A stretch of 20,197 nt of DNA, counting the filler, from Dicyema japonicum (Eukaryota; Animalia; Dicyemida): the NCBI GenBank assembly GCA_011109175.1. It is 3 parts of 3 records of this genome, joined end to end, with 100 filler letters (N's around TTAATTAATTAA, not from the genome) between each part and the next. Parts side by side here need not be neighbours in the genome. Positions count along the whole stretch, not along the records: positions 7,375 to 11,762 come from RDEW01000057.1; 2 more parts are not named here. The stretch is one strand, 5' to 3'. The first letter of the stretch is position 1. The number at the start of each line of letters is the position of its first letter. A program made the translations under genes and the position numbers. The notes under the pieces are model-generated. The model was not told where the DNA came from, did not search any database, and worked only from the letters and a program-made list of their open reading frames with translations. Of the stretch, positions 7,375 through 11,762 are shown piece after piece.

Positions 7375-7685
7375 CAATAATTTGGGCGGCGGCCAGCATT
7401 CTCCCTCTCTTACGGGTCGCTAAGGAGTTCGCAACCTGTTTGCAGATCATGGAATTAAACTTTTATTTCCTTTAAATTAAAGTATTATTTGTTTATTAAG
7501 TTATTGAAATCCGGAATAATCAAGGTTGAAGATGTTCGTAGCAACTGACTCAAGTGATGATCTGTTAGTTTGTTACGATATTTATGTTTTATTCGAATCA
7601 TTTTACTAAATATTGATTCGCATACATATGTAGATCCAAACATTGATATATTCATATATGCATTGTATGTTATATTTTGGAACTT

Positions 7686-7848
7686 TTCTTGAGGAAGTAA
7701 TTCGTAAAAATTAAGGATTGAAGAATTTTTGAATAACGCCGCCAGTTCTATATCATGTTGTAAATTAATGAGTTTTAGCTGAAACTTTGTTCTAGCTTCT
7801 TGAGGAAGTAATTCGTAAAAATTAAGGATTGAAGAATTTTTGAATAAC
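7686..7848. repeat. 52-bp exact direct repeat inside hAT remnant
   Basis: 7686-7737 = 7797-7848 (period 111). Confidence 0.9.
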
Positions 7849-8283
7849 ATCTCAATATTCAGCATCAACTTGTTCCAAAAAAGATTTAAAATATCGATGA
7901 TTGAGTGCTTTTGAGCGTATCCAGTTTACGATATTAACAACTTTTTTAGAAACATAATCCATTTTAATAGATTTGGCAATTTTACTTTAAAAAATTACGA
8001 TATAAGCTGATTCTCGATATCATCTGATATTAATTGTATTTTTCTCGTAACAGTATCATTGATAAGTGTTAATTTTCTAGCAATGTCTTGTATTGTGCTA
8101 GGACAACACTCATTCGCAAATATCTGAATTGCCTCCTTGAATATTTCCCCATCAGTATACGGCTTCATATGTGCTCCAATCAAATGGCATATTTTCAATG
8201 AAGCCATTGTTGTATCATTGTTGGTTGCTCCACTTTTAAAATATGACGTTTTTTTAATATATTCTGATTTAAGAAAGTTCAGT

Positions 8284-8573
8284 TTTCTTTTTCTTGACTC
8301 GCCTAAAATACTATTAATCAATGAGGTTTTCACCTAGATAGGAGTCGAATTTGGAAGAGTGCCGCCGATAATGTCGTTCAATGGTATACGTTTTTAATGT
8401 GTTTAGCGTCGCATAGCATATAAGGCACTTTCTTTTTCTTGACTCGCCTAAAATACTATTAATCAATGAGGTTTTCACCTAGATAGGATTCAAATTTGGA
8501 AGAGTGCCGCCGATAATGTCGTTCAATGGTATACGTTTTTAATGTGTTTAGCGTCGCATAGCATATAAGGCAC
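8284..8573. repeat. 145-bp tandem duplication inside hAT remnant
   Basis: 8284-8428 and 8429-8573, nearly identical. Confidence 0.95.
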
Positions 8574-8899
8574 TGTGCTTTTCCCTTACATTCAACTACA
8601 AAAAATTTTTCTTCCCAGTCTTTTTGAAATACACGATTTTCTTGAGTGATATTTCGATTTCGCTTAATACAACCAGACATAAAGATAAAAAATACCACAC
8701 TAAAATAATTTATTTTAAACTTAAAGTTTGATATAAGAGTAAATAATTAAATCTTAACATTATAAAAAAAATTAACAAAAAAAGTTAGTTGCTCTCCAGG
8801 GGCCGCAAAAATCATCCTGGGGGCCGCATGCGGCCCCGGGGGTTGCATTTGAGAACCGCTGTTCTAGACATTTTAAAAACATTCCTAAAAATGTATTTA

Positions 8900-9460
8900 A
8901 TCATTAATTATATGAAAACAATTTTTATTTTATCAAACAATTACATCAAATATAAAGAAGTGGAAGATGGTTAGTGCCCGATGTACATAAAGCTGCAAAA
9001 CGCTTTTCCAAATCATTAAAGACCTTGAAAAAAATATTTCTCGGACCGAAATCAAAACATATGGCCACATTTGTAGGATTCATTATCAGAAAATATAACT
9101 CTGAAAATCTAAAATTAACNGAAAAAAGCATTGAAGAACCTAAAGGGAGACCATGAAATTAAGAATTTCGGACAAATTATAGATAAATTAATGGTCTCAA
9201 CTCCCATTAAAGAAGGGGAGTTTATAAACTTTACGTACTCTGAAAATGACGAATTACATGAATTTCTTCAAAGCAATACCGATAAAAATGACAATTTAGA
9301 CAGCACAATTACTGCAGATTGTGAAAGAAACAAATACATTACACATCGAGATGCGATAAAAAGTGTTTTGGATCTCAAAAACGACAATTTTGATGTGAAT
9401 ATGCTTAAAAGTTTAATAAAAATGCAAAAGCAGCGATTGCAAATTTACATTACATTGTTA
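8900..9460 (+). mobile_element. Probable pogo/Tigger transposase C-terminal remnant
   Basis: ORF 9131..9484 has an acidic region and an ITHRDAIKSVLDL helix, homologous to 5490-5765. Confidence 0.4.
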
Positions 9461-9469
9461 CCGTTTTCA

Positions 9470-9851
9470 GTTGTAAAGCCTTGACCTGAGTTGGCGATTA
9501 ACAGGCCGCGTTGGAGCCATGTTTTGCGTATTCTGCTCAGTGCCGCGGTAGCCAGCAGCTTTCTGCGGGTAATGTCTTCACTGTCTCCAAGCAGGGAACC
9601 GAGTTTCCTCACATTCCTACAAGTTTCACAAATTTTTGTGTCTATGCGTTTGATCTCATTGAATTCGGTTTTAGAAGTGTTGATTATGAGGAACCACTTA
9701 TTAAGTATCCTTGGAGTGTTGTTTAGAAGATCGATTAGAGCATCTTTGTTGTCCGAAGCGAAGTCAACATCGTCTGCATAGACAATTTCGGTGATAGAGT
9801 CATCGTAGAAAGTTCTCAGATCTCTCAGGGCGGCTTCCAGGTAGATGACAT
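9470..9851 (-). mobile_element. RTE-type reverse transcriptase fragment
   Basis: VIYLEAALRDLR...EIVYADDVDF...W.L.IN..KTE...KLGSLLG.SEDI.RRK.LA..A. YADD at 9769-9780. No start codon, so absent from the ORF track. Confidence 0.9.
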
Positions 9852-10423
9852 TAATTAAAACTCATCAAATAAAAAATCAGAACTGTGTTAAATTGAATTT
9901 ATTCCAAGAAAAATGTTAATTAAATATTATTCAATTAAACTTTGAGAACAATTTCTAAATTTAGGTCAGGTAGACAAAGTATGTTATTAGTAACTGTGGG
10001 TTCGCAAGTATTGCAAACTATTATTAAATAAACAGTTTTTACTATAAGATTCTAGAATCTGCAATGTTCCGGCTCTCAGCTCAACAGTATTATTGATAAA
10101 ACCAACAACATGTGTCATGCCTGAAGGCTGGAATNGATGACATTAATTAAAACTCATCAAATAAAAAATCAGAACTGTGTTAAATTGAATTTATTCCAAG
10201 AAAAATGTTAATTAAATATTATTCAATTAAACTTTGAGAACAATTTTTAAATTTAGGTCAGGTAGACAAAGTATGTTATTAGTTACTGTTGGTTCGCAAG
10301 TGTTGCAAACTATTATTAAATAAAGAGTGTTTACTATAAGATTCTAGAATCTGCAATGTTCCGTCCAGTAGCATAACAGTATTATTGATAAAATTAACAG
10401 GTGTCACGCCTGGAGGCTGAAGT
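9844..10423. repeat. ~290-bp duplication of the LRR gene 3' end split by a single N
   Basis: 9844-10134 vs 10136-10423, N at 10135. 3' flank identical, penultimate exon strongly diverged. Confidence 0.95.
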
Positions 10424-11244
10424 CTAAAACGAAATAATAAAATAACACAAACGCAAGTAGCTCAACAGTATTTTCGCCGAGACAAAGATGTTCACCAGCT
10501 AAAAGATTCATTTGTAAATGATATCTTAAAAATTTTTATCTTACCTAAGCTCTTACTCTTTAAATTTGAACGGAATAAAAACCGATCCTCTCGGCATAAT
10601 CCTAAAAATTGAATTAATTATTTTGGTTAAACATTAAGCGAAGTGGAGCATCAGAAAAAGTATTGATATCGATGTAACGAAGCATACTACAGCCACGCAG
10701 AAATCAATAGAATAGAAATAACAAATATACATGCACGATAATGATTTGAGTCCTTTAAACGAACCTTCAACTAGTTTGTCTAAAAATTGAATTAATTATT
10801 TTGGTTAAACATGAAGCGAAGTGGAGCATCAGAAAAAGTATTGATATCGATGTAACGAAGCATACTACAGTCACGCAGAAGTCAATAGAATAGAAATAAC
10901 AAATATACATGGCCGATAATGATTTGAGTCCCTTAAACGAACCTTCAACTAGTTTGTGCAAAGAGTCACCAGTGCAATTACTATATATCATTTTAAAAAG
11001 TTACAAGGATTCAAGAGAAATCAAATTCGTAAATCGTGGATTTTCTGTGAATGTGACACGTTTAGAAATTTCGTGTCCTTCTAAATACTCCCGTTTAAGG
11101 TTGTCATTATAGAAACAGTCGAAGCTGAAATATATAATAATAAATTCACATTTTAGCCGAAGACCAGCGTGCATTAGAAATATTACAATCCTGCATGGGG
11201 ATGAAAAATTGAAATAATCCTATGAAGATCAAGATGGCAATCAT
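10227..11244 (-). CDS. Secreted leucine-rich-repeat protein, 8 exons, ~215 aa when the 178-bp duplication is collapsed
   Basis: Exons 11244-11150, 11124-11005, 10980-10909, 10882-10811, [duplication], 10601-10557, 10524-10453, 10423-10335, 10309-10227. Introns are 25, 24, 26 (GT-TG; alternative 44-nt GT-AG), 31, 32, 29 and 25 nt, nearly all phase 2, with three 72-nt (24-aa) exons. Product: MIAILIFIGLFQFF (signal-like)...FTNLISLESFNCTGDSLHKLVEGSFKGLKSLSAILLRDCSMLRYIDINTFSDAPLRFM...ICNTCEPTVTNNILCLPDLNLKIVLKV*. Confidence 0.75.
10602..10957. repeat. 178-bp tandem duplication within LRR gene
   Basis: 10602-10779 and 10780-10957. Both tiny introns are identical between copies and the differences lie in exon sequence. 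Confidence 0.95.
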
Positions 11245-11334
11245 TAAAAGAATTAGAACATATTAATTTTATTTAAAATAAATTAATTAATGCAATTAAA
11301 TCTAAAATTAATAAAACAAAATTATTTTATAAGG

Positions 11335-11762
11335 AGGAGGTGGCTAAACTACCCCGCGCAGTGGTATTTTATATGGCCTGTACTGAAAATGTATCAATAT
11401 TAGTGAGCACAACAAAATTAAAAAGCCTTCAAAAATTTTGCCAGCGACAACGAATATAAGAAGTATTGCAAATATATTTTCTTCGAATAAATGGAATAAG
11501 ACTATGCAGATAAGCATGTTAAGCATTAAAAGAATTAGAACATATTAATTTTATAAATTTATTTGATCTATTACAGGGGATGGTCAAACTTCGCCCCGTG
11601 GTGGTATTTATCCGGCCTGCAAGAAAGTTTACGAAAATTGGTTTTAGTTTTTAATCATGTAATAAATCATGTCATTCAAGTGGTTAATTTAATCGGAAGA
11701 CAATTCAAGATATATTTGGAAGATATTGAGACAAAATATAAATTTTATTATTTTTTGTTTCA
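11335..11762 (+). mobile_element. Two related hAT (Charlie-like) terminal fragments interleaved with a paralogous LRR first-exon remnant
   Basis: CAGGGGATGGTCAAACTTCGCCCCG...TCCGGCCTGC at 11574 and a degenerate GGTGGCTAAACTACCCCG...TGGCCTGTAC at about 11339. The motif CATTAAAAGAATTAGAACATATTAATTTTA (start codon and upstream sequence) occurs at 11242 and 11524. Confidence 0.55.

Follow-up and report, generated by a model that had tools for sequence, protein, structure and literature searches.

A divergent direct repeat at the 3′ end of a probable orphan gene of Dicyema japonicum, and its most plausible origin at an assembly joint

The window is a 20,197-nt stretch of Dicyema japonicum DNA made of three joined parts, of which we analyzed the piece at positions 7375–11762 (RDEW01000057.1; 4388 nt, 32% G+C). 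This piece holds a minus-strand gene that we divide into seven exons (Table 1) and that is probably real. Exons 1–5 joined to 6B and 7B come to 576 nt, or 191 codons plus a stop, and six GT..AG introns of 25, 24, 129, 32, 29 and 25 nt link the seven open exon frames (intron 3 measures 129 nt, or 307 nt as assembled). A best-chain-of-ORFs statistic exceeded the values from 399 of 400 composition-matched shuffles, the G+C content was 0.30–0.40 in the exons versus 0.16–0.25 in the tiny introns, the stop is followed at a distance of 32 nt by AATAAA, and the silent bias of the differences between the two versions of exon 7 described below counts as further support for the gene model. Exon 1 opens with an ATG followed by about 15 hydrophobic residues that, read by eye, probably form a signal peptide; the protein is probably secreted. 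Five of the six introns are 24–32 nt long, in keeping with dicyemid nuclear genes, whose spliceosomal introns are mostly shorter than 30 nt (Lu et al., 2019, PMC6736024), and the GT..AG termini, the AT-richness and the many surrounding transposon remnants are likewise those of dicyemid nuclear genes. Among animals, introns of less than 30 nt have been reported only in dicyemids and in myxobolid myxozoans (Zverkov et al., 2019, PMC6543705; Hadjez et al., 2026, PMC13644364).

Table 1. Features of the analyzed piece, in coordinates of the window.
Feature	Positions	Strand	Remarks
hAT element, internally deleted	7485–8698	minus	zinc finger 8462–8698; hAT dimerisation domain 7488–7868
Two-copy tandem duplication	8284–8573		145-nt unit, 2 differences; inside hAT transposase remnant
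RTE-type reverse transcriptase fragment, 5′-truncated	9448–9858	minus	directly downstream of the gene
Copy A	9844–10134	minus	291 nt, last before the N at 10135
3′ flank, copy A	9844–9934	minus	91 nt, includes 6–15 nt of the RTE 5′ end
AATAAA twin in copy A	9898–9903	minus
Exon 7A with stop	9935–10017	minus	copy A
Intron 6, copy A	10018–10042	minus	25 nt
Exon 6A	10043–10134	minus	ends at the N; no splice acceptor precedes
N	10135		single base, exact A/B junction
Copy B	10136–10423	minus	288 nt, first after the N; contiguous with the rest of the gene
3′ flank, copy B	10136–10226	minus
AATAAA polyadenylation-like signal	10190–10195	minus	32 nt past the copy B stop
Exon 7B with stop	10227–10309	minus	copy B
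Intron 6, copy B	10310–10334	minus	25 nt
Exon 6B	10335–10423	minus	copy B
Exon 5	10453–10524	minus	72 nt
Exon 4	10557–10601	minus
Two-copy tandem duplication	10602–10957	minus	178-nt unit, 6 differences; intron 3 (129 nt) together with the final 49 nt of exon 3
Exon 3	10909–10980	minus	72 nt
Exon 2	11005–11124	minus	39 aa
Exon 1	11150–11244	minus	ATG, hydrophobic signal-peptide-like start

At the 5′ end of the gene, a 31-nt string ending in its ATG, possibly a conserved promoter or leader, occurs in identical form at 11242–11272 and at 11524–11554, 282 nt upstream. The upstream copy sits in an older, 74%-identical duplicate of the 5′ module of the gene, which has a hydrophobic 60-aa ORF of its own (11344–11526, minus strand) and represents either what is left of a tandem paralog or a first exon used as an alternative. 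This older duplication is certainly real, so the locus does duplicate.

The preliminary description had assigned the gene to a secreted leucine-rich-repeat (LRR) family, an assignment that found no backing in our searches. Each exon alone (23–39 aa) was compared with Pfam by hmmscan, and none matched an LRR or any other Pfam family at E values up to 10, which is a weak test at such lengths. By eye, we recognized two LxLxxNxLxxL-like stretches, one at the end of exon 5 and one in the middle of exon 6; of the units of about 24 residues that might follow the form LxxLxLxxN/CxL, two are good (exons 5 and 6), exon 3 has a typical second half, and the remaining units fit poorly. The gene resembles small secreted LRR proteins and LRR-based variable receptors (lamprey VLRs) in its hydrophobic N-terminus, its Cys-containing C-terminal exon, its two 72-nt exons, each equivalent to one 24-residue unit, and these two stretches. 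It differs from them in that it matches no LRR profile exon by exon, is not flanked by donor cassettes, carries no signature of somatic assembly, is known in just two variants, and has its replaced residues mostly outside the beta-strand motif. The leucine-rich-repeat label is a weak one.

Relatives of the gene were sought in collections that contain no dicyemid sequences. A HMMER search with exon 2 (39 aa) against 1.84 billion representatives from such collections yielded no accepted relative; one bacterial protein of 2269 aa (P0021, E = 1e-10) was set aside, as its score accumulates over 13 identical repeats of 118 aa that individually match exon 2 only weakly (22 bits, 36%). A word search of proteins, again with no dicyemids included, gave no candidates for the 60-aa open stretch around exon 6B, and an exact look-up of ten ORFs of the piece in a 15-billion-protein collection, also free of dicyemids, found none of them. 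Exact metagenome scans for a conserved 29-mer of exon 6 and a 27-mer from the 5′ end returned nothing, nor did an Rfam search of the piece. The gene is thus probably an orphan.

The most conspicuous feature of the locus is a direct repeat of its 3′ end. The two versions of the penultimate exon that had been described earlier proved to belong to a real repeat, found by a repeat finder at 9844–10107 versus 10136–10399 with 94% identity and by TRF as 1.9 copies of a 292-nt period. We aligned the minus strands of copies A and B globally, and together with a codon table this reproduced all of the earlier counts: exon 6 differs at 14 of 89 aligned nucleotides plus one 3-nt indel (by codon, eight replacements, one synonymous change and one codon indel), the 25-nt intron 6 at two positions, the coding part of exon 7 at four of 83 nt (three silent, one replacement), and the 91-nt 3′ flank at none. 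Divergence between the copies is 6% overall and 16% in exon 6, where differences are enriched relative to the rest of the unit (Fisher p = 2e-4). Within exon 6 the replacements fall into two patches, codons 1–11 and codons 18–21 (7 of 12 nt changed in the latter), while the 15 codons neighbouring them are invariant; seven of the A/B differences are packed into 11 nt (10072–10082).

Differences between the copies grow more frequent toward the contig end bearing copy A, as would be expected if low coverage there had led to base-calling or consensus errors. We nonetheless find this explanation scarcely credible, because the only indel is exactly 3 nt and in frame, no stops or frameshifts occur across the 57 codons compared, and three of the four changes in exon 7 are silent. 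The predominance of silent changes between exons 7A and 7B implies instead that copy A derives from a working gene. As assembled, however, neither an AG nor any upstream exon precedes copy A, whose first base is that of exon 6, and from other acceptors near exon 6A stops are reached within 4–10 codons. Lacking both a 3′ splice site and upstream exons, copy A cannot serve as an alternative cassette.

Both copies carry the junction with the same transposable element downstream of the gene. We call the reverse transcriptase (RT) fragment at this position RTE after the preliminary description, its membership otherwise resting on a Pfam RVT_1 match (E = 8e-8) and on its 5′ truncation. In alignments the fragment starts at residue 64 of an Octopus sinensis RT, and protein and DNA alignments alike place the beginning of RT homology at about 9849–9858, that is, 6–15 nt inside the repeated unit. 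The earlier observation that both copies include the first bases of the RTE junction was therefore correct, and the proposal drawn from it, that A and B represent either alleles of a single locus or a duplicate of very recent origin, was supported, since the same 5′-truncated junction in both points to one insertion site and hence one locus.

The closest relatives of the RTE fragment are annotated proteins of Octopus sinensis (81–82% amino-acid identity), which make up seven of its eight named protein matches, the eighth being from Sycon ciliatum. At the DNA level the fragment is 81% identical to an annotated copy on O. sinensis contig VCDQ01013049.1 (L001 10198–10509), and in a BLAST comparison of the piece with three O. 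sinensis loci the RTE was the sole match. Octopuses are hosts of dicyemids, and the likeness could mean that the octopus assembly includes parasite DNA, that the present one includes host DNA, or that the element moved horizontally between host and parasite. Taken with the tiny introns, these relatives suggest a dicyemid genome or dicyemid DNA within an assembly of cephalopod origin; the contig shows no resemblance to human DNA. On the plus strand at 8974–9484 lie two overlapping ORFs of 60 and 117 aa with no Pfam match, which may have formed the tail of a different transposon, interrupted by the RTE insertion. Nearby, at 8795–8862, a G+C-rich, partly palindromic island of 70 nt stands in AT-rich DNA like the end of a miniature transposon, and looser relatives of this motif occur at 11335–11369 and 11575–11609.

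The differences between copies A and B are distributed as a mosaic. The 111 nt adjoining the RTE contain none, the next 177 aligned nucleotides contain 20 plus the codon indel (p = 5e-5), and divergence switches sharply from 0% to about 11% at 9954/9955. Uniform divergence of A and B is thus rejected, whatever their arrangement. This rules out a tandem copy that has simply diverged in place, and ordinary alleles of a single age cannot give the pattern either. Possible sources are an old or converted tract on one haplotype, a contig end from a paralog, or a second parasite species; identity of the shared part would also follow automatically if one graph edge had been traversed twice during assembly. 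Mosaic tracts are expected of variable-receptor systems, and the pattern fits a converted or recombined tract. Segmental conversion from paralogous donors had been suggested, but the repeat finder detected no third copy of exon 6, whether donor cassette or paralog, within the 4.4-kb piece. Exon 5 was considered as an intragenic donor and dismissed, as the strings it has in common with exon 6A (14 nt) and exon 6B (6 nt) are too short to call conversion.

Diversifying selection had also been proposed for exon 6, and we examined this by Nei-Gojobori counting between the two sequences, copy A and copy B. Exon 6 has 10.7 replacement changes over 65.7 sites and 3.3 silent changes over 21.3 sites, giving pN = 0.162 against pS = 0.156, a ratio of about 1 (1.05) that fits neutrality (Fisher p = 1.0), so this two-copy comparison revealed no excess of replacement over silent change and the proposal was not borne out. 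The raw codon count of eight to one overstates the replacement excess because multi-hit codons hide silent steps. Exon 7 is constrained (pN = 0.017, pS = 0.164, ratio about 0.1), and the contrast in pN/pS between the two exons has p = 0.08. Silent-site divergence between A and B is about 0.16–0.18, more than ten times the published heterozygosity.

These values bear on a reading that follows from the preliminary description, in which a secreted LRR family would have its hypervariable part in exon 6, with diversity maintained by positive or balancing selection or by patchwise gene conversion, as part of a variable recognition or surface-antigen system. The clustering of replacements in two patches beside 15 invariant codons, the mosaic tract, the signal-peptide-like start and the likely parasitic lifestyle are all in its favor. 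Against it stand the neutral-like pN/pS of exon 6, an exon 6 versus exon 7 contrast short of significance in only two sequences, the missing LRR profile, and the failure to find donors or family members in the piece or among public proteins; moreover, false duplications are ascertained exactly where haplotypes diverge most (PMC9516828). We regard as quite improbable the corresponding biological scenario, a secreted LRR-like dicyemid family in which short patches of one repeat exon are kept highly polymorphic by balancing selection or patchwise paralog conversion, giving a surface or recognition protein in evolution against the cephalopod host; A and B would then both be deep allelic lineages within a single family member. 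The same judgement applies to the variable-system reading as originally put, which cuts across the other explanations considered here. The A/B repeat is not evidence for a new variable-antigen system.

The account that we favor starts from the junction itself. The 4388-nt piece contains just two Ns, at 9120 and 10135, and the chance of an N falling exactly between the copies is about 5e-4. The scaffolding program SSPACE writes a single n for a negative gap, a convention for which our literature search found no citable statement. The published D. japonicum assembly was made with Platanus, SSPACE, GapCloser and HaploMerger from an animal sample with 1.24% heterozygosity (Lu et al., 2019, PMC6736024), and dicyemid assemblies have been built from pooled animals (PMC6736024, PMC6543705). 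We hold, with moderate confidence, that the repeat is a false duplication in which the assembler wrote one locus twice, in the form of two natural variants. The sequence before the N at 10135 would be the end of one contig and the sequence after it the start of the next; these ends would overlap by about 290 nt and be too different (6% overall, 16% in exon 6) to merge, and the scaffolder would then have laid both head to tail, creating a false "heterotype" duplication. Copies A and B would both be genuine sequences, showing the 3′ end of a small orphan gene in two haplotypes or population variants; the dicyemid sample was probably pooled and heterozygous. One haplotype would contain a tract of far older descent, which could be a deep allele or could stem from a converted paralog. 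What we observed is the N at the junction, the common RTE junction, the mosaic and the pN/pS values; that contig overlap was the cause and that A and B are allelic is what we infer.

Ko et al. (2022, Genome Biol 23:205, PMC9516828) gave a gap between the pair and unusually divergent haplotypes as hallmarks of false duplication. As in their false heterotype duplications, the copies here form an adjacent pair on one scaffold with a gap between them (the N at 10135), represent the same locus (the RTE junction and the identical 91-nt flank), differ more than their surroundings and create spurious extra exons; that class was defined by read depth, k-mer multiplicity and read-pair discordance, whereas our comparison uses sequence alone and the gap is a single N. 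Also counting for a false duplication are the two further two-copy duplications within the 4.4 kb, whose copies differ by 1.4% and 3.4%, close to the heterozygosity of 1.24%. Several observations count against it. The N at 9120 lies inside an open frame (8974–9156, plus strand) with no duplication around it, so a single N may sometimes mean something other than an overlap between contig ends; no N interrupts the junctions of the two other young duplications, for which junction-spanning sequence may exist; silent divergence of about 0.16–0.18 is far above ordinary heterozygosity; and the older copy of the 5′ module shows that the locus does duplicate.

The last of these points leads to the alternative of a real duplication, either a 292-nt tandem copy of the 3′ end or two complete gene-plus-RTE units in tandem that collapsed where they are identical, with the N hiding the missing stretch. 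De Bruijn assembly also breaks contigs at the boundary of a true tandem unit, the 145-nt and 178-nt duplications are seamless, and an old, diverged duplicate of the 5′ module lies 282 nt upstream. In-place divergence is nevertheless rejected by the contrast of 0/111 with 20/177, copy A would, in the short version, lack an acceptor and upstream exons and yet have an exon 7 under purifying selection, and 4.4 kb would be an unusually small space for three young two-copy duplications. We therefore consider a real duplication rather unlikely.

The two other young duplications have features of their own. The one at 10602–10957 is probably the same kind of artefact as A/B; if real and spliced, its extra 49-nt pseudo-exon would shift the frame of the gene. 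In both young intragenic duplications, this one and A/B, one of the boundaries coincides exactly with a predicted 3′ splice site, at the last base of intron 3 (10602) and the first base of exon 6 (10134), respectively, a coincidence with a chance of about 1e-3 if the splice sites are right, and these boundaries could reflect branch points of the assembly graph at exon edges of a multi-copy family. The duplication at 8284–8573 starts at the first Cys of a Spin-doc-type zinc finger (Pfam zf-C2H2_12). Elsewhere in the same hAT element, a 52-nt exact repeat (7686–7737 and 7797–7848) brackets 59 nt at the deletion point, an arrangement resembling the filler DNA left by abortive gap repair.

The sharp switch from 0% to 11% at 9954/9955 is also what a chimeric contig end would leave. 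The terminal 180 nt of copy A would then have been contributed by a paralog, or by the orthologous gene of another dicyemid in the same host sample, and joined to the locus through k-mers common in the conserved end of the gene. A silent divergence of about 0.17 is at the level of a paralog or sister species, copy A stops exactly at the exon edge where family members would begin to differ, and samples of dicyemids, being pooled from hosts, are difficult to clean (PMC6736024, PMC6543705). One published dicyemid assembly, made with SPAdes, is highly fragmented and includes host DNA (Zverkov et al., 2019, PMC6543705). No paralogous exon is present in the piece and public data yielded none, and we think such a chimera improbable.

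Finally, small extrachromosomal circular DNA or a somatic rearrangement, each of which has been reported from dicyemids, would also yield repeated units if the assembler walked a loop twice. Circular contigs of less than 500 bp are abundant in an assembly of Dicyema sp. (PMC6543705), and the unit lengths of 145, 178 and 292 nt are near integer multiples of 10.44 nt, a post hoc observation on three points. A loop walked twice should give identical copies, however, and needs no N, which makes this explanation very unlikely.

To our knowledge, the proteins with which dicyemids interact with their hosts are essentially unknown; on present evidence the A/B finding opens no new question. If the tandem copy is an artefact, an annotator working from this assembly would report a false extra gene fragment and a reader would infer a gene-family diversification that is not there, while the duplication at 10602–10957 would wrongly break the reading frame of the same gene. 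The real remainder is modest: a probably secreted orphan gene whose introns are ultra-short and in which two natural variants differ, over one stretch, far beyond ordinary heterozygosity.
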